Sequence record: MT586120.1
Length of the DNA: 64,000 nt
Direction: 5' to 3' (one strand)
Shown: positions 28,825 through 63,819 of the stretch, piece after piece
Layout: the number at the start of each line of letters is the position of its first letter
Position numbering within the stretch: the first letter of the stretch is position 1
Position numbers and translations under genes: made by a program
Notes under the pieces: generated by a model
Databases searched by the model: none
What the model was told of the DNA's origin: nothing
The model's input: only the letters and a program-made list of their open reading frames with translations

Positions 28825-29034
28825 ATGGATTCCGTAGCACTATTCCTTTCTAGGGACTACACAATGAGTATCATTCAAGCATTACGTGAAGCAAAGGAGA
28901 GGTGTGATGGAGATGGGCGTAGGATTATGGCTAAACAATATGAAGAAGTTGAGACCATTATGCGTGCTCAACACGATATTGCCCAAAGCATTAGGGAAAA
29001 TATGGATCGGAACGGCGGCGACTACTCAATCTGA
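28825..29034 (+). CDS. hypothetical protein
   Basis: ORF; start uncertain. Confidence 0.55.
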   Translation: MDSVALFLSRDYTMSIIQALREAKERCDGDGRRIMAKQYEEVETIMRAQHDIAQSIRENMDRNGGDYSI

Positions 29035-29090
29035 ACCACTTACCAAAGTGTCCACTACCCCTTGCGGTTCTGCTCGTGAGGGGTTATATT
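29034..29090 (+). promoter_or_regulatory. repeated promoter cassette
   Basis: AACCACTT-accA-AAGTGTCCAC, hairpin, TATATT. Confidence 0.75.
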
Positions 29091-29145
29091 ATATTCATCA
29101 GCCGTGGTATAATAGCTTATTGGACCCAACCATTCTTCTTATTAA

Positions 29146-29961
29146 ATGAATAAACCATTCCTCAAGTGGGCAGGCAACAAGTTTCGTGTCCTTCCCCATC
29201 TCATTCCACATATCGGGTATCCAAAGACTTATTGTGAGCCATTTGGGGGTAGTTTATCTGTTGCATTGAATAATGCTGCTGATAAGTATATTCTAAATGA
29301 TATCAATAAAGACCTTGTAGCTATATACAATAACATTAATAGTGATGGTGAAGACTTTATTCAGTACTGTAATGAGTTGTTCATACCAACTAACAATACT
29401 AAAGAGGCATACTTAGATATACGTAGCCAGTTTAATACTTGTACTGATATGAGAGAACGTGCTCGTATCTTTGTTTATCTCAACCGCCACTGTTTCAATG
29501 GCTTGAGTAGATACAATAGTAAGGGTGGTTTCAATGTTCCTTTTGGTAAGTATGATTCACCTAAATGTCCTATTGATGAGATGAGATTCTTTCATAAGTA
29601 CTTTGAAGGTAAGGAAGTATCCTTTAATTCACTATCATTTGAGCACGAGTCACTATATTCTAGCTTAGGTGAAGGTGACGTTCTCTATATGGACCCACCA
29701 TATGTTCCTGCTACAGAGACAGCAAACTTTACGAGTTATGCTACAGAGGGATTTACTCACGACCAGCAGGTTAAGTTAGCTAACATTGCTGAGGAGTTAT
29801 CATCAAAAGGTGTTAAGGTTATTATAAGCAATCACGATGTACCAATTACTAGAGAATTATATAAGAACGCTAAAATCTACAGTATTCAAGTTAGTAGAAC
29901 CATTTCAGCAAAGAGTAGTAGTAGGAAGAAGGCAAGCGAGCTCATCGCAGTCTACGGATAA
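29146..29961 (+). CDS. dam: DNA adenine methyltransferase (Dam/D12 class)
   Basis: KPFLKWAGNK, EPFGGS, YLNRHCFNGL.RYN.KG.FNVPFG, YMDPPY. Confidence 0.95.
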   Translation: MNKPFLKWAGNKFRVLPHLIPHIGYPKTYCEPFGGSLSVALNNAADKYILNDINKDLVAIYNNINSDGEDFIQYCNELFIPTNNTKEAYLDIRSQFNTCTDMRERARIFVYLNRHCFNGLSRYNSKGGFNVPFGKYDSPKCPIDEMRFFHKYFEGKEVSFNSLSFEHESLYSSLGEGDVLYMDPPYVPATETANFTSYATEGFTHDQQVKLANIAEELSSKGVKVIISNHDVPITRELYKNAKIYSIQVSRTISAKSSSRKKASELIAVYG

Positions 29962-30016
29962 GCCACTTACCAAAGTGTCCACTAACCCACCCGGTGCTGC
30001 CGTGGTGGGTTATACT
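29961..30016 (+). promoter_or_regulatory. repeated promoter cassette
   Basis: AGCCACTT..AAGTGTCCAC, AACCCACC/GGTGGGTT hairpin, TATACT. Confidence 0.8.
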
Positions 30017-30043
30017 AGTTGTATCAACAGAGCAGAGAGCTAC

Positions 30044-31297
30044 GTGATCCAACTTCGTCCCCATCAGCAAGAATCACTCAACAAGCTGACCGTGGCGAGC
30101 CGTGGTCAAGTGATCGTCCCTACTGGCGGCGGTAAGACTCTTATCGGTATTATGGATGCCTGTAAGCGCTTTGAGAGCGCTTCTGAGCCCATCTCCATCA
30201 TTGTTGTGGCTCCACGTTTACTTTTAGCTAACCAGCTCTGTGAAGAGTATATGGAGGTCATCAAGGATCAAGTTTCTACTCAAGTTGTTCCCGCTCATAT
30301 TCATTCTGGGGACACCTCACATTTCTCTACCACCAAAGCCTGTGAGATCCGTAACTTCGTCTCTATGACTCAGGCAGCTGGTCTTCACCGCATTTTCTTT
30401 ACCACCTATCACAGCCTTCATAGGATCGCTGAGAGTAGTGTTCAAGCGGACACCATCTACTTTGACGAGGCACACAACAGCGTTCAGAAGGGCTTCTACC
30501 CAGCTGTAAAGTTCTTCTCAGAGACCACGCAACGCGCCTTCTTCTTCACCGCTACACCTAAGCACAGTGTGACCCCAAAGAAGCCTGGAATGAACGACAG
30601 CAGTGTCTATGGAAACGTTATCGTGAACGTAGAAGCAGGCAAACTTGTCCAAGGGGGCTTCATCGTTCGTCCACAGGTCGTAGCACGTGAGCTGCGCCTA
30701 CTCCAAAAAGATGAGCTGACTTCTCACCGTGATTCCGAGCACATCATTCAGAGCATCGACGAGAGTCGCGTTAGTAAGGTTCTGGTCTGCGCCAAGAGTG
30801 TAAAACAGATTGTTCGTATGGTTGCTGAGTCTTCCTTTGTGAATGACTTGAAGGCACGTGGTTTTTCTTATATGTACATTGCTGCTTCCACAGGAGCAAT
30901 CATCGATGGACGCAAAGTAACCCGCGAAGAGTTCTTTAAGACCCTCAATGCTTGGGGTGCCGATAACACGAAGCAGTTCGTTGTTTTACATCATTCTATC
31001 CTCTCTGAGGGTATCAATGTATCTGGGCTTGAAGCTGTTATTATGCTGAGAGCTATGGATGCGGTAGGTGTCGCGCAAACAATCGGAAGAGTTATTAGGC
31101 TTCACGAAGATGATGCCGCTGGTCTGCGTGCGGGCACCATCACACCAGGTAACACTTCTGAGTATACTAAAAGCTTCGGTCTTGTTATTGTACCCGTGTT
31201 CAACACTACTCAACAGGGCGTAGCGCGTTCCGTTGATAAGATTGTTGATACCATCTTCAACAAAGGTGAGGCAGCTGTATCTGTTATCCGTCGCTAA
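30044..31297 (+). CDS. SF2 DEAD/DEAH-like helicase (type III restriction Res-like)
   Basis: LRPHQ, PTGGGKT, FDEAH, TATPK, LSEGINV, QTIGRVIR; GTG start after cassette. Confidence 0.9.
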   Translation: MIQLRPHQQESLNKLTVASRGQVIVPTGGGKTLIGIMDACKRFESASEPISIIVVAPRLLLANQLCEEYMEVIKDQVSTQVVPAHIHSGDTSHFSTTKACEIRNFVSMTQAAGLHRIFFTTYHSLHRIAESSVQADTIYFDEAHNSVQKGFYPAVKFFSETTQRAFFFTATPKHSVTPKKPGMNDSSVYGNVIVNVEAGKLVQGGFIVRPQVVARELRLLQKDELTSHRDSEHIIQSIDESRVSKVLVCAKSVKQIVRMVAESSFVNDLKARGFSYMYIAASTGAIIDGRKVTREEFFKTLNAWGADNTKQFVVLHHSILSEGINVSGLEAVIMLRAMDAVGVAQTIGRVIRLHEDDAAGLRAGTITPGNTSEYTKSFGLVIVPVFNTTQQGVARSVDKIVDTIFNKGEAAVSVIRR

Positions 31298-31503
31298 ATA
31301 CTAGAAAGAATGGCTATACCATGGAACCAATCACACTAACAATACTAGTTGGCTTGATGCAAGTATCACCAACTCACTGTCAATTTGAATTGCTACATCC
31401 AAATGGAGTTATTGACACTCACGTTGTTAAGTGTGAGTATATCATCAATGGTGATATACTACCAATCACATAAATATCATTACATTACCTTTAACCACAA
31501 TAC

Positions 31504-31525
31504 CTCCCGCAAGGGGGGTTTTTTA
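31504..31525 (+). terminator. intrinsic terminator
   Basis: CTCCC-gcaa-GGGGG plus T-run. Confidence 0.6.
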
Positions 31526-31589
31526 ATGGAATCTTCACAATTCAGCTCATCCGTGTTAGAATACATACATTGTTACGATACACTACACA

Positions 31590-31895
31590 ATGAAAGCATT
31601 TTTCTTAATCCTTGCTAGTGCAGTTCTAGCATCCCCCGTAGCTGCTGCTGAGGTAGGTGTGCGCCATACTCACGGTCATACCACTAGCAACACATACAAT
31701 GGTCGCTCAGTCACCCGTAGCCACTCACAGGGCAGCTTTGCAGAGGTCTCTGGTGGTGGTTCTGCCGGTCATAATGGTGGTTCTGGTTATCGCCGCGTAG
31801 AGGCAGGCAGCTATGGTAGCCGCACCCGTGAAAGTTTTGATTTTAACAGCAGAACTACATCAACATTCACTGAAAGTAGCACTTTTAGTCGGTGA
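31590..31895 (+). CDS. small secreted Ser/Gly-rich protein
   Basis: Signal peptide MKAFFLILASAVLASPVAA. Confidence 0.75.
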   Translation: MKAFFLILASAVLASPVAAAEVGVRHTHGHTTSNTYNGRSVTRSHSQGSFAEVSGGGSAGHNGGSGYRRVEAGSYGSRTRESFDFNSRTTSTFTESSTFSR

Positions 31896-31958
31896 TCAGA
31901 CCAATTCTTAGCGAGAAAGAAGAGATAAGCCCCAAAATGTCCTATTTTACCTACAACA

Positions 31959-32468
31959 ATGCTAAAACATTTGTTCGTGGGAGCACTTATCTCTTTTTCT
32001 TGCTCCCCTGTGCTTGCTAACGGTCAATCTACCGTGTCTTCCAGTAGTAATGCACAAAATAACCAGAATAACAATGGAACTGTGAATCTTGCCCCTATGG
32101 GTGGTTCAAACTCCAACTATCAGATCAATTCTGTATCAAATAGCCAGTACCAATTCGGTCCTGGTATCTCTTGTCCCACACCTGAACTTGGTATTGGGGC
32201 TTTTGGGGGCAATAATAGCTCATTTGATTCTGATTATAGCAACGGTTCTAACAATATAGGTGCAACCTTAATGTTTACTACACCTTTGGGCGGTGATATT
32301 GGTCGTTATTGTAAAGAATTGGTACAGGAGATCACCAAACAACGGCAATTGGACACAAAGGTGACTATGATTCGCCAATGTGCGCAGTTTGCTCGGGAAG
32401 GTGTTATACTAGACACCGAACAGTTCCCCGAGTTCGCTATCTGCTCTGCTGTAACAGTCACTCGGTAA
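31959..32468 (+). CDS. secreted hypothetical protein
   Basis: Signal peptide; four Cys (SCPTP, RYCKE, RQCAQ, AICS). Confidence 0.75.
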   Translation: MLKHLFVGALISFSCSPVLANGQSTVSSSSNAQNNQNNNGTVNLAPMGGSNSNYQINSVSNSQYQFGPGISCPTPELGIGAFGGNNSSFDSDYSNGSNNIGATLMFTTPLGGDIGRYCKELVQEITKQRQLDTKVTMIRQCAQFAREGVILDTEQFPEFAICSAVTVTR

Positions 32469-32511
32469 ACTGTCCACTAATCCACGACAGCCTAGCCTAG
32501 TGGGTTATACT
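32466..32511 (+). promoter_or_regulatory. repeated promoter cassette
   Basis: AACTGTCCAC, hairpin, TATACT, CATACCAAACAAGG leader. Confidence 0.8.
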
Positions 32512-32540
32512 ATTCACATACCAAACAAGGTCATTCACAA

Positions 32541-32735
32541 ATGTCTGAAAACATGAGCTACTCAGCAGTTCTTTATGAAATGCAAGAGATTAAAGATGAG
32601 TGGCGTCGTAATACCTATACATACCACGAAGGTCAAAAAGAACGTTATGCACTCCTTCTTGAGGTCCGCCGTATCCGCGTTGCTCAAATGTACGCAGATG
32701 GGCGAGTACACGATGGATCAATGCAGTCAGGCTGA
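32541..32735 (+). CDS. hypothetical protein
   Basis: ORF behind cassette. Confidence 0.75.
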   Translation: MSENMSYSAVLYEMQEIKDEWRRNTYTYHEGQKERYALLLEVRRIRVAQMYADGRVHDGSMQSG

Positions 32736-32769
32736 TTCACTGCCAACTGAAGTAAACAACACACTAATT

Positions 32770-32910
32770 ATGGAAAATCAACCCCTAGATCAGTACTGGA
32801 CCACTCCTTATGGCGATTTTGCCATCCGAAAGACTCGTTTTGGTGCTACACTTGTATGGATGGGACTAAACATCAGTATTGTTATTACTGATAGTCCAAA
32901 AGACGAATAG
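32770..32910 (+). CDS. small hypothetical protein
   Basis: MENQPLDQYWTTPYG..., followed by hairpin terminator near 32918-32938. Confidence 0.45.
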   Translation: MENQPLDQYWTTPYGDFAIRKTRFGATLVWMGLNISIVITDSPKDE

Positions 32911-35713: not shown

Positions 35714-35955
35714 TGACTGACGAAATCCTAGACTACACCGAAGAAGTAAGTGTCACACTATCACGTTCTGATTGGAACTGGTTTGTTACACTTATGAGTG
35801 ACTCCGTTGATAAAATGGAGCTAGCAGTTGCTGCTGCTGGTAAAGACTCTGCCGAGTTCCTAGCTATTGAGACCCTACGCACTATTCGTAATGAAATTGC
35901 CCGACAATCTGGACTTGACCAATTTATTGAAGGAGATGCCCGTCAAAGCTCCTAA
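35713..35955 (+). CDS. hypothetical protein
   Basis: Coupled ORF. Confidence 0.7.
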   Translation: MTDEILDYTEEVSVTLSRSDWNWFVTLMSDSVDKMELAVAAAGKDSAEFLAIETLRTIRNEIARQSGLDQFIEGDARQSS

Positions 35956-38422: not shown

Positions 38423-38477
38423 GACAGTTCTAATAGTGTCCACTGCCCCTTGCTAGGGGCTTTTTTGTTGTTATACT
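38423..38477 (+). promoter_or_regulatory. repeated promoter cassette
   Basis: GACAGTT..AGTGTCCAC, GCCCC/GGGGC plus T-run, TATACT. Confidence 0.8.
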
Positions 38478-39594: not shown

Positions 39595-40239
39595 ATGAAT
39601 AAGATATTTGCATTATTGGCTGCTGTCGTAGCAGCTACACCCGCACAAGCTGGGTTCATTATCCCTGATGATATTGTTCCACTAAGTGGAGAAAGAGCCA
39701 GTAGAATGTTCTGGCGTGGATGTATTGATGAGAAGGGTGAGATTACTAAGATAACTGTTAAGTGTGATAGAATCTTTAAGCCTAAACCAACCCAAGCAAG
39801 GGTAGAATGGAAGAACGCAAAGAAGTGTGAGGAATATACTCCTGGTTGTGTATCTGTTGATGCTAGTATTCAAGTTGGGGGCTTTCAGCTTTCAGTTCTA
39901 TCAGCTAGAACTAGAAGACGCCGTGGTCCTGGTGGTGGTTGGGAGTCATATTCTCAACTAGATATGGCTCTATCTAAGAAAGGTTTTGAGCAATATTCTA
40001 TCAACTGTACTGATCCTGATAGTGATATTAGAGTGCTAGATTTTGATGGTAAACCTAAGCATATGTATAGAACAACACAGTTTAGACTTGATCTATGTAA
40101 TAGTGTATTCCCTGAGCTTGAGCGTGATACAGCATATCAGTTGAAAGAGTTAGCTTGTAGGCTTACGAAGGACCCAAAAAAGAATAGAGAGTGTTGGATA
40201 GACTTTAAGGAGTGGAGAGCAAACAGGAGGTATAGATAG
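39595..40239 (+). CDS. secreted hypothetical protein
   Basis: Signal peptide MNKIFALLAAVVAATPAQA; multiple Cys. Confidence 0.75.
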   Translation: MNKIFALLAAVVAATPAQAGFIIPDDIVPLSGERASRMFWRGCIDEKGEITKITVKCDRIFKPKPTQARVEWKNAKKCEEYTPGCVSVDASIQVGGFQLSVLSARTRRRRGPGGGWESYSQLDMALSKKGFEQYSINCTDPDSDIRVLDFDGKPKHMYRTTQFRLDLCNSVFPELERDTAYQLKELACRLTKDPKKNRECWIDFKEWRANRRYR

Positions 40240-40295
40240 ACCACTTTGAGTAGTGTCCACTGCCCCAACACAGGGGCATTTTTATGCTCTATAAT
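40239..40295 (+). promoter_or_regulatory. repeated promoter cassette
   Basis: GACCACTT-tgagt-AGTGTCCAC, TGCCCC/GGGGCA plus T-run, TATAAT. Confidence 0.8.
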
Positions 40296-40318
40296 AATTT
40301 CATTGAAACGGACACACC

Positions 40319-41278
40319 ATGCACACCACCAAGACTCTCTATGTAGAGACAGACTCTGCCGAGACAGACTCTGCTAAGGTTACGGGGCTTTTCAGAAACA
40401 TTATTGGTGACGCATTTGACGCAGATGAACGCGCCAAGCAATATAAGGGGAAGAGACGCCAAGACTTCTTTGGTCATTGGGATTTACCTCCAGGTATACG
40501 TGATTACCTCATTCATACAGAACTTAAGCGCCCCTGTTATAGTGAACGAGTGATCTGGAGAGATCCTAAGGTATCAGATGTGCAGTCGAAAGAAGTATTT
40601 GACTTTTTTGTTGATAAAAACAGTACAGTAGCAGAAATGAAGCAAGTTGTTATTGATCTTATAAGTGAAGTTGTCCTTTCTATTGGTGGAGAGTCTAAGG
40701 TAAAGCCGTTTATTCCCACTACATGGCAGAGAGACGCTATTAGATTTGTTGCTCAGTCTCTATCTGAAGGTAAGACTACTCTAATGTTGGAACTTGCTGC
40801 TCGCTTTGGTAAGACTGGAACTAGCGTTTGTATGTTTGACTATTCCAGTGCGGATGTTATGGTAGTTACAAACTATGTAAAAACTGTTAATAAAAGTTTT
40901 GGTAATACTGTTGTTGACTTTTTTGCGGACAGAATGGTCTATGTTGATGCTAGATCTAAAAATGCAGAGTCTATGATTGATTCTGCACTAGCTAATGGGA
41001 AAAAAGTTGTTCTTGTATGTAGTTTACACCATAGCCAAAATTTAGATTATAATATTGATATGATCCGAAAGTATGATAACAGGATAGTTTTTGTGGATGA
41101 AGCGGACTTTGGTTGTCATAAAGACAAACAAGTAAGTCGAGTCAAACGACTAAGAGAAAATGTTCCGCTCATTCTTATGACAGGCACTGGTGCGGACAAG
41201 GCAGCTGCTAGCCATCACATAGATGGTATGCTCTCAACCACATATTTTGATATGCTGTTACAGACTAACAAGGCTTGA
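40319..41278 (+). CDS. SF2 helicase, N-terminal (RecA1) half
   Basis: PTTWQ (Q motif), ARFGKT (Walker A-like), VDEADFG, MTGTG; ends before RecA2. Confidence 0.8.
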   Translation: MHTTKTLYVETDSAETDSAKVTGLFRNIIGDAFDADERAKQYKGKRRQDFFGHWDLPPGIRDYLIHTELKRPCYSERVIWRDPKVSDVQSKEVFDFFVDKNSTVAEMKQVVIDLISEVVLSIGGESKVKPFIPTTWQRDAIRFVAQSLSEGKTTLMLELAARFGKTGTSVCMFDYSSADVMVVTNYVKTVNKSFGNTVVDFFADRMVYVDARSKNAESMIDSALANGKKVVLVCSLHHSQNLDYNIDMIRKYDNRIVFVDEADFGCHKDKQVSRVKRLRENVPLILMTGTGADKAAASHHIDGMLSTTYFDMLLQTNKA

Positions 41279-41303
41279 CATGGCTACCCACACACCGTAC
41301 AAT
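41275..41303 (+). promoter_or_regulatory. sigma70 promoter
   Basis: TTGACA-17-TACAAT. Confidence 0.75.
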
Positions 41304-41309
41304 ATTCAT

Positions 41310-42626
41310 ATGAAACAACCAACTATCGACCTATCTCGCTTTGAGTCTGACTTCCAAGGCGTAGTCTCCCCCCTCCAAAACTCAATCCCATCCGTCAGAC
41401 TCTATGAATGGAATTTGGCAGATTATGCTGCCAAGCAGGTTGAGCTTGCCCCTGAAGAAGCATACGCATCATGGATAAAATCAATGGACCGTAATGCAAT
41501 GGGTGATGGTCTTAGGTCTGCCGCATATTGGCGTGGATTCTATGACATTTTGATTGGTAAGAATTGGGAGTATGAATCTCTAGCATTAGAAAATTCCATT
41601 GGAAGTATGGGGTCTGTTATGCAATTCATTCCACCCCACGCCAACGGGCAGGCTGGTGCAGCTTCTATGGTTGTAGAAATTGCCAAAGCCGCACTAGGTC
41701 AAAAGTATCACGTCAAGTTTCTTTCTGGGGCAGATAACGTCAAAAATGAGACTGCAGAAAGGGAGGCGGAAGATGCTTTAATTGAAGCCAGTAGAGTTGG
41801 TAAAAAGGTGTGGTTTATATCTCAAGGTATGGCATGTAGATCATTCAGTGTGCCTGAAATTGATACTGTTCTTCTTACATATGATGGTGGTGCTATGGGT
41901 GCCACTATTCAAAAACTTAGCCGTGCTTGTACTGCGGGTGAGGTAGATAAGTTGGCTAAAGTTGTTGCGATCAGTATTGACCCCAACCGAGATGATAAGC
42001 TGACTGGGTTTATCCTAGATGCCGCAGTTAAGGCAAGCGAAGAGAATGAAACTGATTTGAATGAAGAGCTTCGTCGTGCTCATGCTACATTTCCCCTCTT
42101 CACTCAGCATGGTGATGCTTTTCTTCCTATTTCTGAGGATGAATACTTAAAGAGAGCAATGAAGCTGAGTAGCGTCAAGCGTCTTGCTGTATCCCGTGAG
42201 GCACTGATCAATATCGATCCTGCTGTTGCCATGGATCTAGTGGAACAGTTTAATAGTAATGTCTCTCCCACTAATCGAGCCGGTACTAAAGATGTTGGTA
42301 TTAAGGGAAGTCGCTTCCAAGATACTCCCACACCAAAGGCAAAGGTAGACGACAATGAGGAACAGAAAGCAATGAACCGCCTTCAGGAACAACTAACTGC
42401 CTTTGTTGAGCATGTTGAGTTTATATCATACCTAGTAGACGAAGAGTATCCCTCCATTGATTCTATCCTCTCTTCTGCTGAGCTGAATGATCAGAATTCC
42501 TATGAGTTTCAAGAACTGGCGGGGATGATGCCCAATGTCGTTCGTCAGTGTCTTGGATTGGGTCTCCTCTCTCGCACTTGGATTGACTCCACTATCTTGG
42601 CTTCCCGACAGGAGCACACTAACTGA
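41310..42626 (+). CDS. SF2 helicase, C-terminal (RecA2-like) half
   Basis: ISQGMACRSFSVPEIDTVLL (motif V-like), IQKLSRA (motif VI-like). Confidence 0.7.
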   Translation: MKQPTIDLSRFESDFQGVVSPLQNSIPSVRLYEWNLADYAAKQVELAPEEAYASWIKSMDRNAMGDGLRSAAYWRGFYDILIGKNWEYESLALENSIGSMGSVMQFIPPHANGQAGAASMVVEIAKAALGQKYHVKFLSGADNVKNETAEREAEDALIEASRVGKKVWFISQGMACRSFSVPEIDTVLLTYDGGAMGATIQKLSRACTAGEVDKLAKVVAISIDPNRDDKLTGFILDAAVKASEENETDLNEELRRAHATFPLFTQHGDAFLPISEDEYLKRAMKLSSVKRLAVSREALINIDPAVAMDLVEQFNSNVSPTNRAGTKDVGIKGSRFQDTPTPKAKVDDNEEQKAMNRLQEQLTAFVEHVEFISYLVDEEYPSIDSILSSAELNDQNSYEFQELAGMMPNVVRQCLGLGLLSRTWIDSTILASRQEHTN

Positions 42627-42637
42627 TGTGGCAGGGG

Positions 42638-42666
42638 TTGACTTCCATTCTATTTTATGTCATAAT
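42638..42666 (+). promoter_or_regulatory. sigma70 promoter
   Basis: TTGACT-17-CATAAT. Confidence 0.65.
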
Positions 42667-42672
42667 ACACCT

Positions 42673-43734
42673 ATGAAAAACAACCTCCTCTTCCGTCTCA
42701 AAGGTCAGCAGGCAGCCGCCCAAGAACTTGTTTCTGAGATCCCTGAGCGTCTCTTCACTGACGATAGTATTGTATTCTATGATCCCGCAATGGGCGGCGG
42801 ACAGTATCTTCAAGAGATTCTAAATAGGGCAAAGGTTGATTATGATAGAGATATTTCGGCAAGGGTGTTTGGCTCCGAAGAGTCTGTAGTTCACCTCAAC
42901 TGGGTAAAGCGCAATACCTCAGTTCCCAAAGAAAATATTACTAAAGGACCAGCAGACATGAATTTTAGTGCGTGCATTGGTAACCCACCATACTCAGATA
43001 GAACAAGCGACAGCCCCAACTCAAAGAATCTTGATAGTGTATTCTTTGAAAATGCGATTAGTCGGTGTGGATATGTGTCTATGATTATTCGTGCTAAGCA
43101 TTTTGTTGATGCTCGTAGCAACTTCCGCCGTAAGCTGTTCACTAGTGGTCACCTAGTTTCTATAAAGAGACTCGATGATTCTGTGTTCCCCACTATTCAG
43201 AATACAGAGACTTGTGTTGTTACTTGGGATAACAACCACTCAGGTCCATGTAAGATTGAATATAAAGATGGAACGGTTCATCAGATTAATCTCACCCGCG
43301 ATACTGTAATTAAACTAGATAATCCTGAGTTTGGTAAAGTCATTGAGAACAACCTTGCGGATCGTTGGATTCGTGGTCATCTTTCGCGTGGTCAAATTGT
43401 TGAGGGTGATGCACCTATGATTGAGATTATGGGATCCGGCAAATCGCCAGTTATTGCGAACGTTTCGGTTGGTCAAGAAGATACTGCCCGCAATCGTTAT
43501 GGTGTTATTATGAATGTGAATGGTTCTCATGGTAGTTTTGGTGTAGTTCATATTAAACCTTTCAGCGCATCAATCTCCAATAGCGTGATCGCTCTGTTAA
43601 CTAATACCGAAGAAGAAGCAATTATTTTATATAATTATCTAAAGTCTGAGGAAGTCAGTGGTATTGTTGCATCAAACAAACAGAAGCAGTGTAATACCAG
43701 GACTCTTTTTAGTAATATCCCATCTCCACTATAA
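42673..43734 (+). CDS. Eco57I/TaqI-like adenine methyltransferase with target-recognition domain
   Basis: FYDPAMGGGQYL (motif I), IGNPPY (motif IV). Confidence 0.85.
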   Translation: MKNNLLFRLKGQQAAAQELVSEIPERLFTDDSIVFYDPAMGGGQYLQEILNRAKVDYDRDISARVFGSEESVVHLNWVKRNTSVPKENITKGPADMNFSACIGNPPYSDRTSDSPNSKNLDSVFFENAISRCGYVSMIIRAKHFVDARSNFRRKLFTSGHLVSIKRLDDSVFPTIQNTETCVVTWDNNHSGPCKIEYKDGTVHQINLTRDTVIKLDNPEFGKVIENNLADRWIRGHLSRGQIVEGDAPMIEIMGSGKSPVIANVSVGQEDTARNRYGVIMNVNGSHGSFGVVHIKPFSASISNSVIALLTNTEEEAIILYNYLKSEEVSGIVASNKQKQCNTRTLFSNIPSPL

Positions 43735-43742
43735 AATTAATT

Positions 43743-44144
43743 ATGACTAAAAACAAGCACAATGAGAATGTAGGATCTGATATTGAACGTTCTAATGAGC
43801 GCATTGATCAGACTGGTGAAGTATTCACTCCTATGGAACTGTGCCGTGAGATGGTCAACGAACTACCACTAGATGTACTACAGAATCCTAAGAGCACATT
43901 TATTGATAATTCTGCTGGGTCGGGCAACTTCATCATCGCTCTCCGTGACAGACTACTAGAATATCACGAGTTATCACATATCTTAGACAATATGCTCTAT
44001 ACTGTTGAGTTTATGGAGGATAATCACGCCGAGTTGTGTGAGAGAATAGGTGTGCCTGTTACTCACCCACATTATGTTAGAGCTGATGCTACCACATATG
44101 ATTATAGCTTTGGTGAGCCTATAGGATTAGAGGCATTCTTCTAG
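43743..44144 (+). CDS. stand-alone SAM-binding half of an N6-adenine methyltransferase
   Basis: TGEVFTP, FIDNSAGSGNF, LYTVE..EDN; no NPPY. Confidence 0.8.
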   Translation: MTKNKHNENVGSDIERSNERIDQTGEVFTPMELCREMVNELPLDVLQNPKSTFIDNSAGSGNFIIALRDRLLEYHELSHILDNMLYTVEFMEDNHAELCERIGVPVTHPHYVRADATTYDYSFGEPIGLEAFF

Positions 44145-44198
44145 CCACTTTGAGTAGTGTCCACTGCCCCACCACAGGGGCATTTTTAATGTTATGAT
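44143..44198 (+). promoter_or_regulatory. repeated promoter cassette
   Basis: 44-bp near-identity to the cassette at 40241. Confidence 0.8.
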
Positions 44199-44219
44199 TT
44201 ATCCATCAGCTTAACGCAT

Positions 44220-44537
44220 ATGATCGAAGCTATCGCAGCTCCAAACACACAGGTCACTGAAGAGGGTGGACTCTTCTACATCACTATGAGCGTTGGTCCT
44301 GATGAGGTATGCACTGCTTGTTATATGCGCGACAAGGCGCAGAGAGTGGTCATTATCCAATTAGATACACCAGTGGAGTATAGAGGCAATGGCTACGCTA
44401 CAGCCCTCCTGGAGAGCATACAGAGGCGTGAGAAGACTGGTCCTATCCGTGTGATTAGTACTAGCCATGCCGTTGGTTTCTACAATAAGCTAGGATACAT
44501 TGAAGTATCACCATACGTGTTCCAAAGCTCAAACTGA
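44220..44537 (+). CDS. GNAT acetyltransferase
   Basis: EYRGNGYATALL, AVGFYNKLGY. Confidence 0.85.
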   Translation: MIEAIAAPNTQVTEEGGLFYITMSVGPDEVCTACYMRDKAQRVVIIQLDTPVEYRGNGYATALLESIQRREKTGPIRVISTSHAVGFYNKLGYIEVSPYVFQSSN

Positions 44538-49955: not shown

Positions 49956-49996
49956 GTAAAGTGTCCACATGCCCGACCCATCCACAACTACTATAG
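49948..49996 (+). promoter_or_regulatory. degenerate promoter cassette
   Basis: GACAGTA..AAGTGTCCAC; hairpin eroded. Confidence 0.55.
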
Positions 49997-49998
49997 AT

Positions 49999-50922
49999 AT
50001 GAAATTTGATGTTATTATTGCCAACTTCCCATTTGATGACGCCAATAGTTCTGCCAAGAATGGTAAGCTATGGAAGAAGTTTACAGACAAGTGTATTGAT
50101 GATCTACTAAAGACTGGAGGCACAATGAATATTGTATCTCCAACTACTATCTTATCTAAGATCGACTATGGCATGAAGAAGGTCAAGCAGTTCTCAACAA
50201 CTCAGAGTTTAGTTGCTATTGATTATTCAGTTGGTGAGAAGTTCTTCGCAACTATTGGTTGTCCAATCTGTAAGTGGACTATGGTAGATAAGCCATATGA
50301 TGGTAAGACTGTTGTGACTGATATTAAAGGTGACTATGAGTTTGATATCCGAGTTGGTGATGGACTTCCTATGCGCCATGAGCGTATGGTACTTCAGAGT
50401 ATTCTTGATAAAATCCAGAACTCAACCCACCCACGCATTCCAACAAAAACGGGACAGCAAATAACAGGTGAAGAATATAAAAAAAATGGTAAAAATCTAA
50501 AAGCCACTGACTGTGGTACATATCCAATATTCCACAGCGGAAAAAAAATACAATATACTTATACACAACCAACTACTGGAACTGGGCTTAAGTTTGTTAT
50601 TCCATTCTCCGCATCCCATAGATCAAGATTTATCACTACTGGGTATATTGGAATGTTTAATGCTTGGTGTCCGATCAAAAATGAAGACGAGGGTGAGTAT
50701 CTAATGAAGATTATGGATCATCCACTTATTGATCTCTATATCACCAAGCAGAACCGATATATTAATTATGAGTCTAATAAGTTCACTACAACGACAGGCT
50801 TCGCTCAAGTTGTCAGGACTAACCGCCTACCATATCTTGAGAGCTTCGAGAATCTAGCAGAACAGTTCAATCTAACTTCAGAAGAAGTTGAGTATCTAGA
50901 AGGAGTTGGTATCAATGTCTAA
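49999..50922 (+). CDS. catalytic/TRD half of an Eco57I-like adenine methyltransferase
   Basis: Starts MKFDVIIANFPF (motif IV variant), LKTGGTMNIVSP; no SAM-binding motif I. Confidence 0.75.
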   Translation: MKFDVIIANFPFDDANSSAKNGKLWKKFTDKCIDDLLKTGGTMNIVSPTTILSKIDYGMKKVKQFSTTQSLVAIDYSVGEKFFATIGCPICKWTMVDKPYDGKTVVTDIKGDYEFDIRVGDGLPMRHERMVLQSILDKIQNSTHPRIPTKTGQQITGEEYKKNGKNLKATDCGTYPIFHSGKKIQYTYTQPTTGTGLKFVIPFSASHRSRFITTGYIGMFNAWCPIKNEDEGEYLMKIMDHPLIDLYITKQNRYINYESNKFTTTTGFAQVVRTNRLPYLESFENLAEQFNLTSEEVEYLEGVGINV

Positions 50923-51325
50923 AAACAATCACAATTTAGAGTCTGGATCATCACTGAACAGAAGTGATGATAGAATAATAGAGACCCAAGAGGTATTCAC
51001 TCCAATGGAGTTGTGCCATCTAATGGTACAAGACATACCATTAGATATTAGGAAGAATCCAAAAAGCACATTCTTAGACAATTCATCGGGTAGTGGTAAT
51101 TTTATAGTTGCCCTACTGGAAGACCTACAAAATTATCATTCTAGAGAACATATCATATCAAATATGCTCTATGCAGTTGAGCTTATGGAAGACAATCATA
51201 TAGAAATGTGTGAGCGTCTAGGTATATCAACAACCCACCCACACTTTGTGTGTCACGACGCATTAACATATGATTATAGTTTTAGCGAACCCCTCAATAC
51301 ATTAGATGCAATGCTATTCCACTAA
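50915..51325 (+). CDS. stand-alone SAM-binding half of a methyltransferase (paralogue of 43743)
   Basis: TQEVFTP, FLDNSSGSGNF, LYAVELMEDN. Confidence 0.8.
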   Translation: MSKNNHNLESGSSLNRSDDRIIETQEVFTPMELCHLMVQDIPLDIRKNPKSTFLDNSSGSGNFIVALLEDLQNYHSREHIISNMLYAVELMEDNHIEMCERLGISTTHPHFVCHDALTYDYSFSEPLNTLDAMLFH

Positions 51326-51371
51326 GCAAAGTGTCCACTGCCCCTTGATAGGGGCTTTTTTATGCTATAAT
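51319..51371 (+). promoter_or_regulatory. repeated promoter cassette
   Basis: AAGTGTCCAC, GCCCC/GGGGC plus T-run, TATAAT, TTCATACCAAAC. Confidence 0.8.
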
Positions 51372-51395
51372 TTATTCATACCAAACAACAGGGCA

Positions 51396-51599
51396 ATGGC
51401 TTCTCACTACAATGGCTTCATGGATGACGCGACAGCAGCTCTACCTAATAGGTCCGAGGATGAGTTGACCGAGGTATTTTATTTACTTGAGTTGTTTAGT
51501 TCTCAATACACCCCCGAGGACGGGGACTATACAGAGTACCTAAAGACGAGATTAATCTCATATCATACATCATTAGGTATGATGGATCCAGATCAATAA
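51396..51599 (+). CDS. hypothetical acidic protein
   Basis: ORF between cassettes. Confidence 0.65.
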   Translation: MASHYNGFMDDATAALPNRSEDELTEVFYLLELFSSQYTPEDGDYTEYLKTRLISYHTSLGMMDPDQ

Positions 51600-51641
51600 G
51601 TGTCCACTAATACACCATAGCCCACCTAGGTGGGCTATACT
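51598..51641 (+). promoter_or_regulatory. repeated promoter cassette
   Basis: AAGTGTCCAC, perfect palindrome AGCCCACCTAGGTGGGCT, TATACT. Confidence 0.8.
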
Positions 51642-51669
51642 ATATTCAACAAGCAAAGCAAACTAGTCA

Positions 51670-52755: not shown

Positions 52756-52840
52756 GAGCATACATTGCCCACTCATAGACTATAATTACAAGAGTAGACA
52801 CACCCCCACCTCAATCAAACAAACTACACACAAATAACAA

Positions 52841-52999
52841 ATGAAAACATCACACACTGTATTAATTTCAGCTACAACAGCATCTGCATTCGTCATTGGT
52901 AAGAACTATGCACCTCGAACAACTTGGGACATTTTTATTGTTTTGTTGCTAACTGCTATTATGAGTCTTATGATTCAATTTGTGAGGGAAAATAGTTGA
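52841..52999 (+). CDS. 52-aa two-TM protein, paralogue 1 (not in track)
   Basis: MKTSHTVLISATTASAFVIG...VRENS. Confidence 0.65.
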   Translation: MKTSHTVLISATTASAFVIGKNYAPRTTWDIFIVLLLTAIMSLMIQFVRENS

Positions 53000-53054
53000 G
53001 GTATATTCTAATTCCACCCCCACCTCAATCAAACAAACTACACACAAATAACAA

Positions 53055-53213
53055 ATGAAAAACTTACACATTGCAGCAATTTCAGCGGTATTATCATTTA
53101 CATTTATTATTGGATTAACATATGTACCTGAAACAACTGGTTATTTTATTGCTGGTTCTGTATTAACTGCTGTTATTAGTCTTGTTATTGGTTCTATGAG
53201 GGAAATTAGTTGA
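53055..53213 (+). CDS. 52-aa two-TM protein, paralogue 2 (not in track)
   Basis: MKNLHIAAISAVLSFTFIIG...MREIS; same leader and trailer as paralogue 1. Confidence 0.65.
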   Translation: MKNLHIAAISAVLSFTFIIGLTYVPETTGYFIAGSVLTAVISLVIGSMREIS

Positions 53214-53303
53214 GGTATATTCTAATTCCACCCATTGCAGCGCCTATTCACCTGTCGCGCCACTAATTGTACTTGCAGTAATCTTTACTTTGGATAATAA
53301 ACT

Positions 53304-54427: not shown

Positions 54428-54529
54428 AGTAACGTTCACGATGAATGTAGAAGATAAACCCAACCAACCTAAACGATTGATTGAGTTGTTAATATAATCA
54501 CTTGTAAGCACATAGGAACCATCTATACC

Positions 54530-54754
54530 CATAGAGTACATAGAGCCTATTAGCTCCATAGAGTCCATAGAGCCTATTAGCTCCATAGAGCCTATTAGCT
54601 CCATAGAGTCCATAGAGCCTATTAGCTCCATAGAGTCCATAGAGCCTATTAGCTCCATAGAGTCCATAGAGTCCATAGAGTCCATAGAGCCTATTAGCTC
54701 CATAGAGTCCATAGAGCCTATTAGCTCCATAGAGTCCATAGAGTCCATAGAGTC
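54530..54754. repeat. two-unit tandem repeat: 11x CATAGAGTC (one variant) and 7x CATAGAGCCTATTAGCTC
   Basis: Parsed by hand; 225 bp. Confidence 0.92.
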
Positions 54755-55098
54755 CATAAGGGGTACCCACTCATAACCGATGGGTCACCCGAGTCTTAGC
54801 CTATTTTCTATCGAAAGTCAAGCGGAACCCCACGGGACACAAAATTTTCTGGGAAATACCTCGGAAAAGTCCTCTCAGGTTCTCTCATAGAACTCTCATA
54901 AAGGTATCCTAAATAGATGTGCTTATCGACACAGCAATACGCTATAAACCTTAAGGATACTAGCAATTGCTTGAAAGACTGCTATAATATATCCATAGGG
55001 GGAAAGCAATGCCCCCACGTCAATCCCCTAAATGGGGGAAAGACACTATGGTCATCTTCACAAACTGATGAACCTCTGATCCATTACTTCCTACTACT

Positions 55099-55350: not shown

Positions 55351-55351
55351 T

Positions 55352-55590
55352 GTAATACTGCGCTGTGTATAACCTTCGCGTGTGATATACTGCGGTGCAT
55401 ATACTCTGTGTGCCTGCATATACTGCGCTGTGTATAACCTTCGCGCTAGTATATACTGCGCTGTGTATGCCTGCGGCGCACATATTCACAGCGTAACACA
55501 GCATATAATATACAGCATACACGCAGTATATAATACGCAGCGCACGCAGTATATACTCACACACATACAACAATATACTGCGGGAGCTGT
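55352..55590. repeat. cluster of ATATACTGCG motifs in both orientations
   Basis: About five forward and two reverse copies; TACTGCGCTGTGTATAACCTTCGCG twice. Confidence 0.8.
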
Positions 55591-55791
55591 CACTCTCGCA
55601 GTATTTTTGTGTGTCTCGCTGCGCCCCCTCTGATAAAGGCACAACGGACTGCGGAATCTCTTAAGGATCCTGGAGATATTATAACATATGCGTATCATGC
55701 AGCGCAAGCGAGTCTCATAGTACTCTCATATATACTATTCTAGGTTTTTCCTAGATTATGTGCTATAATATATCTTCACCACCTTGGGCTA

Positions 55792-57706: not shown

Positions 57707-57772
57707 CAGCGCTCTATTTAACCTTCGCAACCATTCTAACATACTGCGCAGCATTTAACAAGCGCGCACACA

Positions 57773-57796
57773 TATACTGCGCACGCAGTATATAAT
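57773..57796 (+). promoter_or_regulatory. palindrome ATATACTGCG-CA-CGCAGTATAT overlapping TATAAT
   Basis: Perfect 10-bp arms; same motif as the 55.4-kb cluster. Confidence 0.7.
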
Positions 57797-57816
57797 ATAC
57801 ATCACACACATTACTA

Positions 57817-57984
57817 ATGAACAACTACATCGACGACGCAGCACTCTATGAAGATATACTGCGCGAGGACGAAGTATATAATGGGCTACGCAGGCTTGAG
57901 CTGCCTGTAAGGGATGGACGCAGGCAACAGCGTAGACGCAGGGAGCGCCAGCGTCAAGCTTGTTACAATAAGTATCACAACTAG
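57817..57984 (+). CDS. small Arg-rich protein (not in track)
   Basis: MNNYIDDAALYED...RRQQRRRRERQRQ. Confidence 0.5.
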   Translation: MNNYIDDAALYEDILREDEVYNGLRRLELPVRDGRRQQRRRRERQRQACYNKYHN

Positions 57985-58039
57985 GACAGTATACTAACTG
58001 TCCACCAAACCAACACAGCGCAGCCATCTGCGCTATATT
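57984..58039 (+). promoter_or_regulatory. repeated promoter cassette
   Basis: GGACAGTA..AACTGTCCAC, AGCGCA/TGCGCT, TATATT. Confidence 0.8.
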
Positions 58040-58063
58040 ATATACATCAACACAAGGAACCCA

Positions 58064-61774: not shown

Positions 61775-62365
61775 ATGACCAAACTCACCACGCTTCAGGT
61801 TGCAGCCAAGCTCAAAACCACTGATTTCAGTGCATTCCCTAAGCCCGGTAAGAATAAGGGCGACCGTGGGCAGCTTCTTGAGTTAGCGCTTGGCGTTGCT
61901 AATTCTAGCGACTTGACTGACCTCCTCGATGGTGAGATTAAATCATTCACTCAAGGGCAGACGATTGCAGTCACCCAAGTTAAGCATTGTCTTACCGAAA
62001 TCATCGAAGAGAAAGTATCATTCAAAGAGAGTAAAGTCGGAGAGAAGTTAAAGCAAGCAATTTACGTAGGCTTCACTCGCAATAACGATTACATTGGTAC
62101 TGAGATTGTAAACGAAGAAAATTCAACAGCACATTATCAAGAATTGGAAGAGGATTACAACTTCATTGCTGATAGCATCCGCAACGCATTCGATACTAAT
62201 ACAACATTAGCAACTATCACTGGACCTAACAAACTCCTGCAAATTCGTACCAAGGCATCTAAAACCAACGGCAGATATGTGCCCCTATGTTATGCTGGTC
62301 AGACAATGAAAGATAAGGCAATGGCGTTCTATCTTACCGCTGGTTTCGGTAAAGAAATCATGTGA
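61775..62365 (+). CDS. MutH/Sau3AI-family PD-(D/E)xK endonuclease
   Basis: NKGDRGQLLELALG, D..DGEIK, LLQIRTKA, AFYL..GF parallel MutH motifs. Confidence 0.75.
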   Translation: MTKLTTLQVAAKLKTTDFSAFPKPGKNKGDRGQLLELALGVANSSDLTDLLDGEIKSFTQGQTIAVTQVKHCLTEIIEEKVSFKESKVGEKLKQAIYVGFTRNNDYIGTEIVNEENSTAHYQELEEDYNFIADSIRNAFDTNTTLATITGPNKLLQIRTKASKTNGRYVPLCYAGQTMKDKAMAFYLTAGFGKEIM

Positions 62366-62799: not shown

Positions 62800-63264
62800 A
62801 TGGCTACCTACACAAACGCTCAATTGATCGCATTCTTTAAGCAATGGGAGCCTAAGGTTCAATACTTCGGGATCGATATTGTCCCCCCTGGATTCTTCAA
62901 GTTCTACAAGCAGGGTAGGGAGCTTGTTAAGGCAGAAGCTGCTGCCACCTTAGCAGCTGCTAAAACTAACAGCCGCACCCCCCTAACAGAATCCGAGCTT
63001 CGTCCCGTCTTCGAAGAGTACCTCGCAACATATCTCGATAATGGGCTTAAGGCTAAGGTCTTTGATCGCTATGCTCCAGTTGAAGCCATTAGCACCGAGC
63101 GCCTAGATAGGGTCGCTACCGTTATGGGTATCCATGGGCAGATCGCCGCTCGCGATACTAGAAATAACTCAACTAAGAGCTGCCTGGATCGTATGGGTAA
63201 AACGCTTGTAGCCATTCTCGAAGAGTACAATGAAATGGTAGGATTCGAGCGCTTCGCCGCATGA
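62800..63264 (+). CDS. hypothetical protein
   Basis: ORF behind cassette. Confidence 0.75.
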   Translation: MATYTNAQLIAFFKQWEPKVQYFGIDIVPPGFFKFYKQGRELVKAEAAATLAAAKTNSRTPLTESELRPVFEEYLATYLDNGLKAKVFDRYAPVEAISTERLDRVATVMGIHGQIAARDTRNNSTKSCLDRMGKTLVAILEEYNEMVGFERFAA

Positions 63265-63554: not shown

Positions 63555-63560
63555 CCAGCC

Positions 63561-63599
63561 AAGGGGGTTGACGGATCAGCCCCCTCTATGGTCTACAAT
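63561..63599 (+). promoter_or_regulatory. repeated promoter cassette
   Basis: GGGGGTTGACG..CCCCC, TACAAT; near-identical to the copy at 63757. Confidence 0.75.
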
Positions 63600-63624
63600 T
63601 CTTACATACCAAACAAGGGAACCG

Positions 63625-63768
63625 ATGAACGCCAAAATCTACATAGCATCGATGACCATTGGCTTCACGCTCTCCACCCTAGCCATTGTATTTGGGGCTA
63701 TGTCCTTGGACTTCCAAGAGCCTTCGGCAGCAACCCCAGTTGCTCAAATCACCTGCCAAGGGGGTTGA
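63625..63768 (+). CDS. small single-TM protein
   Basis: IYIASMTIGFTLSTLAIVFGAM. Confidence 0.6.
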   Translation: MNAKIYIASMTIGFTLSTLAIVFGAMSLDFQEPSAATPVAQITCQGG

Positions 63769-63794
63769 CGGATCAGCCCTCTATGGTCTACAAT
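63734..63794 (+). promoter_or_regulatory. repeated promoter cassette
   Basis: TTGACG-18-TACAAT, CATACCAAACAAGGGAACCG. Confidence 0.75.
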
Positions 63795-63819
63795 TCATTC
63801 ATACCAAACAAGGGAACCG

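Follow-up and report, generated by a model that had tools for sequence, protein, structure and literature searches.

Near-identical predicted promoter-hairpin cassettes flank variable gene modules in the early hyperplastic region of Synechococcus phage S-CAM7

The sequence analysed was that of Synechococcus phage S-CAM7 isolate 0809CC03 (MT586120.1), a T4-like cyanomyovirus of the family Kyanoviridae. The window comprises 64,000 nucleotides of this record; coordinates refer to it, and the features described below lie on its + strand. S-CAM7 SB42 and S-CAM7 0910CC49 (CC49) were used as sister isolates for comparison. Between 29 and 64 kb, about 34 intergenic cassettes of 60-85 nt with one shared architecture were found, which account for about 7% of the sequence of this region. 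Nearly every small gene or module in the array is preceded by one cassette. A cassette is composed of an upstream dyad with GTGTCCACT or a variant as its core, followed by a GC-rich hairpin, a -10 box and, directly before the ATG, a short leader. The core GTGTCCACT is present in 12 copies in the window (0.6 expected), a number reached in 0 of 100 shuffles, which excludes chance. For GTGTCCAC, the 221-kb genome has 16 forward-strand sites, of which 14 fall in the 29-59 kb interval; from 1 to 28 kb, no forward-strand site other than one at 10.8 kb was found.

Cassette hairpins were stable compared to shuffled sequence (z -1.95 to -3.2). A hairpin followed by a T-run, and thus terminator-like, characterizes a subfamily at 38445, 40261 and 44165, and the same architecture was seen at 51326. 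In most other cassettes the hairpin abuts the -10 box without a T-run. The dyad element precedes the -10 box by about 28 nt, the hairpin occupies the -35/spacer position, and some cassettes carry an extended -10 box (TGnTACAAT). A scan for consensus sigma-70 promoters (-35 and -10 hexamers 17 nt apart) did not pick up the cassettes. The cassettes are very probably composite regulatory elements of the S-CAM7 early hyperplastic region, with predicted promoter and terminator activity.

A first-pass annotation of the window had described a 44-bp repeat with one mismatch that encloses exactly four genes of a helicase/methyltransferase module. This repeat is present at 40241-40284 and 44145-44188, with the mismatch (A/C) in the hairpin loop, and brackets exactly four annotated genes (slot 1). 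The 44-mer begins 2 nt past the stop codon of gene 39595-40239 and directly past that of gene 43743-44144. The left cassette (40240-40318) contains the 44-mer with dyad, GTGTCCACT, GC hairpin and T-run (terminator-like hairpin at 40261-40278), followed by the -10 box TATAAT and the leader. The right cassette (44145-44219) consists of the 44-mer and a leader before a GNAT-family gene (44220-44537).

The first three genes of slot 1 (40319-43734) are variable, and each sister isolate has different genes at this position. Sequence searches against Pfam, PHROGs and PDB gave nothing for the first two (319 and 448 aa). PADLOC returned a weak P-loop/DinG-like match for the 319-aa protein, and the searches assigned no family to the 448-aa protein. 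The 353-aa protein contains an Eco57I-like methylase catalytic part. The helicase label of the module is therefore weakly supported for 0809CC03, although clear DEAD/ResIII helicases are carried by the slot 1 alleles of the sister isolates. A donor search in other phage records found no DNA match to the three variable genes outside 0809CC03. The fourth gene (43743-44144, 133 aa) encodes the SAM-binding N-terminal part of a gamma-class N6-adenine methylase and is conserved in 3/3 isolates. It is a paralogue of a 136-aa gene in slot 2 (62% identity); the first genes of the two slots (319 and 317 aa) are not paralogues.

Among the three isolates the module at 40.3-43.7 kb was replaced, not deleted. 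The window matches SB42 at about 99% identity as far as 40298 and no longer from 40299 on, which places the left junction between the -10 box and the ATG. In the 133-aa gene, identity among the isolates is 76-92% over the 5' 250 nt and reaches at least 98% in the 3' part. The module swaps thus have their right junction within this gene, near 43990, and not in the right cassette. The left 44-mer of the window is identical to the right 44-mer of the sisters, and the 3' part of the same cassette is of the left type; the left cassette is thus a recombination-style hybrid.

Relatives with an empty slot were found in metagenomes. An exact-pattern scan of IMG/VR with the 44-mer gave nothing; a metagenome scan then yielded relatives of the 44-mer. 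In contigs L101 (98% identical) and L102, one cassette is present and the whole four-gene module, including the 133-aa gene, is missing. The alignments of L101 to the left and right flanks overlap on exactly the 44-mer 44145-44188, and those of L102 likewise overlap on the 44-mer. Five states of slot 1 were observed: empty, a one-gene state with a beta-class methylase (contig L099), and three different helicase/methylase modules.

At the dmt locus, an identical 22-mer (29036-29057 and 29963-29984, 927 bp apart) brackets a dam gene, as the first-pass annotation had reported. The left cassette (29035-29145) comprises the 22-mer dyad, its own hairpin (29057-29084; -19.7 kcal/mol, z -3.0) and -10-like boxes, and is predicted to drive dmt. 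The cargo of the 927-bp indel unit, dmt (29146-29961), encodes a D12-class N6-adenine DNA methyltransferase (Dam; Pfam PF02086, E 3.6e-59). The right cassette (29962-30043) carries the second 22-mer, a hairpin, the -10 box TATACT (30011-30016) and a leader before a gene for a UvsW-like helicase. All DNA from the left-cassette hairpin through dmt is missing from the sister isolates, and dmt was not found anywhere in either sister genome. In the alignment, the single cassette of the sisters is composed of the left flank of the window, the 22-mer and the hairpin and -10 box of the right copy. A viral contig of 88% identity (L098) is likewise devoid of dmt and carries the empty site, and a viral-metagenome contig skips from 29034 to 29980. 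The crossover maps to the 22-mer (both sisters and L098 having one cassette).

Since L098 shares the empty site with both sisters, parsimony favours a gain of dmt in 0809CC03. Judged by these comparisons, dmt is the only one of the loci for which the direction, insertion or deletion, appears resolved. The interval just right of dmt (30.0-32.8 kb) differs from the sisters at 63 positions versus almost none in the flanks. For this reason, dmt may have arrived within a longer recombination patch and not as a cassette-to-cassette unit. A search for a donor of dmt found none: the closest IMG/VR proteins were at most 75% identical, and the closest phage records had about 65% DNA identity. With respect to outgroup synteny, no dam gene is located upstream of the helicase in ACG-2014f, and one is found a gene away in S-RIM8, so that L098 is the more informative outgroup.

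The third repeat pair, at 63.6 kb, had been described as near-identical copies enclosing one small gene. This was confirmed: the copies, about 65 nt long and 197 bp apart (63559 and 63756), flank a single unannotated ORF of 47 aa with one hydrophobic segment (63625-63768), the cargo of a 197-bp unit. The left copy (63555-63624) has a hairpin of -21.3 kcal/mol (z -3.2), an extended -10 box (TACAAT) and a leader; the right copy (63752-63819) is located before gene 63820. The unit is present in 0809CC03 and SB42 and missing from CC49, which has one cassette. By alignment, the CC49 cassette consists of the left flank joined to right-copy variants, with the crossover within the first ~22 nt of the repeat. 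An exact-pattern scan of IMG/VR for an outgroup gave nothing.

Slot 2 (49961-51669) contains a GTGTCCAC element at 49961, a split methylase pair (49969-50922 and 50915-51325), a gene of 67 aa and a cassette at 51600-51669. The sisters have a different module here, with both junctions at GTGTCCAC. In metagenome contig L100, the slot 2 module is missing and one cassette is left. The empty sites of slots 1 and 2, which derive from metagenome contigs, could in principle be mis-joins through the repeat. We consider this unlikely because CC49, whose left flank L101 matches, shares only about 16 exact bases between its left and right cassettes. Further cassette-to-cassette replacements were detected at 61781/62365 and 62807/63246. 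Two indels lie outside cassettes: one of 1157 bp at 32840 coincides with a 6-bp microhomology within a gene, and one of 60 bp at 35720 is also in coding sequence. Base composition showed only small GC dips, which are not diagnostic of foreign origin.

Presence/absence and replacement polymorphisms with junctions inside cassettes were thus found at four loci. Relatives with a single cassette were identified for all three repeat pairs of the first-pass annotation, each time with the crossover inside the repeat. Breakpoints fall within the repeats in these empty-site relatives, but not at the right end of the slot 1 swaps among the isolates, which lies in the 133-aa gene. For pairwise similarity, all 34 cassettes (561 pairs) were compared. 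The three flagged pairs (dmt, 40.3-44.1 kb and 63.6 kb) were the only reciprocal-best pairs that are also neighbours, consistent with the expectation that adjacent copies should be closer than random pairs. They ranked 4th, 26th and 38th of 561. Several non-adjacent pairs were more alike than the flagged ones (e.g. 59092/61308, 47-nt exact match; 34880/44538, 46 nt), and near-identity alone is therefore no mark of recent insertion. The reading of the first-pass annotation is supported by the empty sites at its three loci.

The cassettes very probably serve as homology patches for the phage's own recombination and replication, at which modules are gained, lost and exchanged. Like cassettes would act as short patches of homology for this machinery. 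Recombination between two cassettes in direct order would remove the intervening genes, so that a single hybrid cassette remains. A module would be inserted or replaced when this reaction runs backwards or when a co-infecting relative takes part in a double crossover, and the incoming module would bring its own predicted promoter and terminator. UvsX-type homologous recombination or repeat-mediated template switching could provide the enzymology, possibly through a circular intermediate; a RecA/UvsX homologue is encoded in the S-CAM7 genome. The proposal that a module inserted by recombination at a cassette and thereby duplicated it is retained as to recombination, but not as a transposon-like target duplication: recombination needs a cassette on both partners, and the flanking copies would therefore be hybrids of pre-existing cassettes. 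Likewise, the cassettes would be mobile as portable homology patches and not as autonomous mobile elements.

Three other explanations were weighed against exchange at homology patches. The cassettes might only promote direct-repeat deletions through single-strand annealing or replication slippage, in which case the filled state would always be ancestral and insertion would never occur. Direct repeats of 22-44 bp at distances of 0.2-3.9 kb are classic deletion substrates, and the 197-bp unit and slots 1 and 2 could have changed in either direction. However, the empty dmt site common to both sisters and L098 speaks for a gain, the four unrelated cargo sets found between the same slot 1 cassettes require gains or replacements besides losses, and the genes at 61.8 and 62.8 kb were replaced from cassette to cassette. 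Deletion as the sole process is accordingly considered improbable. It is far less probable that a dedicated recombinase recognizes either the dyad or the hairpin and has a fixed cutting position, as in an integron-like site-specific system. The array is indeed made up of single-gene units that each carry a conserved element with a hairpin, and the dyad (GTGTCCACT) is conserved well enough for a candidate protein-binding site. Yet no tyrosine or serine recombinase candidate (PF00589 or PF00239) was detected in the whole 221-kb genome, in a search that was positive in 14/14 and 12/14 control genomes. The crossover site also differs from event to event: it was mapped to the dyad (dmt), before the hairpin loop (L101), between the -10 box and the ATG (window versus SB42), and in or after the hairpin (L100 and, less securely, L102). 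This spread within the cassette argues for homology rather than a fixed site, and some swaps terminate inside the conserved 133-aa gene.

Finally, cassette similarity could reflect nothing but selection on a shared promoter/terminator design, with the indels being unrelated illegitimate events in intergenic DNA. The high similarity of some non-adjacent cassettes agrees with this, as do the two indels of the region that use no cassette. The same cassette class is moreover present in distant cyanomyoviruses (e.g. ACG-2014f and S-RIM8), which implies that function constrains the sequence. Against this, the single cassette of the relative is at four loci a precise hybrid of the flanking copies, with no bases extra or missing, and the only reciprocal-best neighbours all have empty-site relatives. 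There is hardly any chance that selection on design accounts for these patterns by itself. A broader version of the preferred reading, exchange at homology patches, is put forward as a conjecture that is probably wrong in this full form: a phage or host protein bound to the conserved dyad could both set early transcription and stimulate recombination, and the arrays could form a dedicated exchange platform across marine cyanomyoviruses, which keeps a few slots stocked with interchangeable DNA-methylation and helicase modules against host restriction.

T4-like cyanophages belong to the most abundant viruses of the ocean, and their variable islands are well known. To our knowledge, the mechanism by which these islands are filled and emptied is not settled. 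In S-CAM7, junctions were resolved within the shared bases of a repeat, both in metagenomes and in isolates that share one coast. DNA methyltransferases (Dam, two split Eco57I-like enzymes, a beta-class enzyme in a relative, and the helicase/methylase modules) make up much of the cargo that can be recognised, which would connect the mechanism with evasion of host restriction. S-CAM7 lines that were evolved in the laboratory and bear many large deletions exist (bioRxiv 10.64898/2026.10.08.757702), and module shuffling is therefore directly testable.

Among known systems, integron cassettes (attC and IntI) resemble the S-CAM7 arrays in that mostly single-gene units lie between hairpin-forming repeats and are gained or lost there. 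In contrast to integrons, S-CAM7 has no integrase of any kind, each unit has its own predicted promoter and the crossover point is not fixed. T4-like cyanophages have variable genomic islands, and repeat-mediated deletions occur in T4. In T4, deletions at GGGC/GCCC motifs were reported (cited in PMC2839356). As in S-CAM7, near-identical isolates differ in gene content within defined regions that precede the structural genes. What sets S-CAM7 apart is that its junctions could be placed in one particular repeated regulatory element, to within the bases that the repeat copies share.

Shuffling at promoter-early stem-loops (PeSLs), including circle formation, was demonstrated by experiment in RB49 and phi1 (Arbiol et al. 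2010, PMC2839356), and the mechanism was extended to the pairs T4/PST and KVP40/nt-1 (Comeau et al. 2014, PMC4122927). For cyanophage S-PM2, PeSLs were weighed and judged unlikely (PMC4503421), and our literature search found no description of PeSL-type modular shuffling for cyanophages. The systems differ in phage group, S-CAM7 belonging to the marine cyanomyoviruses (Kyanoviridae), and in element layout: in place of a -35 hexamer at 17 nt, the cassettes have a conserved dyad that precedes the -10 box by ~28 nt, and their hairpin lies in the -35/spacer position, whereas in PeSLs it is upstream of the promoter. Mini-circles, small circular DNAs formed by recombination between neighbouring elements, are the experimental hallmark of PeSLs; the comparison with S-CAM7 covered sequences. 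Both elements are short promoter-plus-hairpin composites located ahead of small early genes, and both cluster in hyperplastic regions, outside the core structural and replication modules. In both, indel and replacement junctions of close relatives are located inside the elements, the crossover position within the element is variable and hybrid elements are left behind. Both also have DNA-modification genes in the cargo and reside in a T4-like myovirus with its own recombination system. The S-CAM7 arrays thus appear to fit homology-driven modular shuffling of the PeSL type, a mechanism already known from T4-like phages of enteric bacteria, and would carry the PeSL model over to a distant branch of ecological importance.

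The window matched bases 1-64000 of MT586120.1 (Synechococcus phage S-CAM7 isolate 0809CC03) at 100% with identical coordinates. This T4-like cyanomyovirus (Kyanoviridae, Mazuvirus), with a genome of 221 kb, has Synechococcus WH7803 as its isolation host. It was compared with two further complete isolates, 0910SB42 (SB42; KU686213) and 0910CC49 (CC49; KU686212), using the matching 46 kb of each. When every intergenic gap from 28 to 64 kb was listed, about 34 elements of common design emerged, here termed cassettes. Their order is upstream dyad element, GC-rich hairpin, -10 box, short purine-rich leader, then start codon. The cassette core GTGTCCACT was present in 12 copies (0.6 expected in the window), and 14 of the 16 forward-strand GTGTCCAC sites of the whole genome were located between 29 and 59 kb. 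Cassette hairpins were stable compared to shuffled sequence, and those at 40261 and 44165 are followed by T-runs and were predicted to be terminator-like. The three repeat pairs described in the first-pass annotation were recovered: 44-mers at 40241 and 44145 with one loop-base difference, identical 22-mers at 29036 and 29963, and copies at 63559 and 63756 with 22, 20 and ~25 identical-base stretches in common.

Likeness of the 34 cassettes (561 pairs) was assessed by local alignment scores and 10,000 order permutations. Adjacent copies were more alike than non-adjacent ones: the mean score was 30.4 for neighbours versus 17.5 for non-neighbours, and was reached in 0 of 10,000 permutations. Much of this reflects regional subfamilies. 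Neighbours were mutual best matches only in the three flagged pairs. Among all 561, their ranks were 4th, 26th and 38th; exact matches were longer (47 and 46 nt) in several pairs of cassettes that are not adjacent. A recent event can therefore not be proved from similarity alone, and relatives must be compared.

Relatives with a single cassette, as expected if modules are inserted by recombination at a cassette, were found for the D12-class Dam methylase gene dmt (29146-29961, plus strand; unit size 927 bp). In SB42 and CC49, the 69-aa gene and the helicase are separated by one cassette, and dmt was found nowhere in either genome. This cassette combines the window's left flank and 22-mer with the right copy's hairpin, -10 box and leader (alignment A1), which places the crossover inside the 22-mer. 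The same empty site, again with this 22-mer, was present in an IMG/VR contig (L098) only 88% identical to S-CAM7. Gain of dmt in isolate 0809CC03 is thus the more parsimonious reading. The join recurs in contigs of an environmental viral metagenome: one jumps from 29034 to 29980, skipping dmt, and in a second the end of the upstream gene is joined directly to 29963; dmt was carried by other contigs of the same run.

Over the 2.9 kb to the right of dmt (30000-32840), 63 differences from both sisters were counted, versus almost none at 33.0-35.5 kb and very few at 26-29 kb, so that a longer recombination patch may have brought in dmt. This block, which has the dmt unit as its left limit and a 1157-bp indel as its right limit, looks like a patch from a related phage. 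A close donor of dmt was searched for and not found. A second patch of raised divergence from the sisters was located at 38.5-39.0 kb. The start of the UvsW-like helicase is recorded as GTG at 29975, inside the cassette and upstream of its hairpin and -10 box. A better fit to the promoter layout is the in-frame GTG at 30044, located just ahead of the conserved LRPHQ motif. In the sister records the start is annotated further downstream, equivalent to ~30110.

At 63.6 kb, two copies and a 47-aa ORF are present in the window and SB42 (unit size 197 bp), versus one cassette in CC49. In the latter, the left flank is joined with right-copy variants (alignment A2), so that the crossover lies within the first ~22 nt of the repeat.

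For the 44-bp pair (slot 1, 40.3-44.1 kb), single-cassette relatives were found among metagenome contigs; the isolates themselves show replacement. All three retain both cassettes with different interiors: genes of 319, 448 and 353 aa in the window (the last with an Eco57I-like catalytic part), genes of 203 and 417 aa and a 481-aa DEAD/ResIII helicase in SB42, and a 704-aa ResIII-like protein and a 348-aa Eco57I-like methylase in CC49. The left junction between window and SB42 is at 40299, between -10 box and ATG. The right junction among isolates is not at the right cassette. A 133-aa gene (43743-44144) is kept in 3/3 isolates, its first 250 nt being 76-92% identical and the remainder at least 98%; the swaps were therefore resolved inside this gene. 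Scanning metagenomes for the cassette core yielded further contigs (L099-L102), among them the decisive relatives for slot 1. L101, which matches S-CAM7 at 98% identity to either side of slot 1, runs from a CC49-type upstream gene through one cassette directly into gene 44220. It lacks the entire module, the 133-aa gene included, and its left and right alignments overlap on exactly the 44-mer. The more distant L102 is built like L101, its left-type and right-type bases being mixed in another pattern, and in L099 slot 1 holds a single 242-aa beta-class methylase. At least five states thus occur between the two cassettes. The window's left 44-mer equals the right 44-mer of the sisters, and its 3' part is left-type (alignment A3); this cassette is a hybrid, as would be expected from inter-cassette recombination.

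Upstream of slot 1, a gene for a secreted-looking protein (window 39595-40239; L005 14146-14582) is replaced by another in CC49, L101 and L102, with only the first ~25 nt in common. The slot-1 cassette is therefore an identity island between two independently variable segments. Within the four-gene module, classical sigma-70-type promoters with a -35 hexamer were predicted between genes 1 and 2 and between genes 2 and 3 (41275-41303 and 42638-42666; 11/12 and 10/12 matches), unlike the cassette promoters of surrounding phage genes.

A two-gene N6-adenine methylase of permuted order occurs twice in the genome (42673-44144 and 49969-51325). The Eco57I-like catalytic part is encoded by the upstream gene, the SAM-binding N-terminal motifs by the 133/136-aa gene downstream; the two small subunits are 62% identical. 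In 80 IMG/VR loci (L009-L088) the small gene was 61-75% identical (two outliers, 34-41%), with an upstream partner of ~180 to 1137 aa and usually overlapping stop and start codons.

Both sisters have another module in place of 49969-51599 (slot 2), joined at GTGTCCAC on either side; contig L100 lacks the module and has a single cassette. Cassette-to-cassette replacement was also observed for the genes at 61775-62365 and 62800-63264. Two other events occurred outside cassettes. The 1157 bp at 32840-32845, present in both sisters and missing from the window, has a 6-bp microhomology (TTGGTG) inside coding sequence at its junction and is an illegitimate deletion or insertion. The second event is a 60-bp indel at 35720.

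Repeats of other types were also recorded. At 52801-53233, a small gene and its leader form a tandem 214-bp duplication (copies 78% identical; one copy in CC49), with an intergenic repeat lacking the GC hairpin. Units of 9/18/27 bp (CCATAGAGT / CCTATTAGCT) are arrayed in tandem at 54484-54800, within the annotated minus-strand ORF 54498-54770; array length varies among the three isolates. Long intergenic stretches at 55351-55791 and 57707-58063 contain many short repeats of ATATACTGCGC type and its complement, distinct from the cassette type. The dominant signal in any repeat search of the window is a very long collagen-like Gly-X-Y run (13000-16900; 9-nt periodicity) in a large structural gene.

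Insertion of modules by recombination at a cassette, as proposed in the first-pass annotation, is thus supported, with the qualifications above, by junctions in cassettes at dmt, at 63.6 kb and at the empty sites of slots 1 and 2. Crossover positions within the cassettes vary, no tyrosine or serine recombinase is encoded in the genome (control genomes were positive), and a RecA/UvsX homologue is. Together this points to exchange driven by homology, through the recombination and replication machinery of the phage itself, rather than to a site-specific system. In lab-evolved S-CAM7 lines, large deletions are reported to build up in variable regions (2026 preprint, bioRxiv 10.64898/2026.10.08.757702).

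In a full-text literature search, promoter-early stem-loops (PeSLs) of T4-like phages had been weighed for a cyanophage in only one research paper, on S-PM2, where they were judged unlikely (PMC4503421). Cassettes of the S-CAM7 class can also be seen in ACG-2014f and S-RIM8. In RB49 and phi1, excised circles form and re-integrate (PMC2839356). The S-CAM7 cassettes match the PeSL model (Arbiol 2010, PMC2839356; Comeau 2014, PMC4122927) in architecture, location, junction behaviour and cargo type. They differ from published PeSLs in host group, being found in a cyanophage, and in lacking a -35 hexamer, with the hairpin in that position and the dyad element further upstream.
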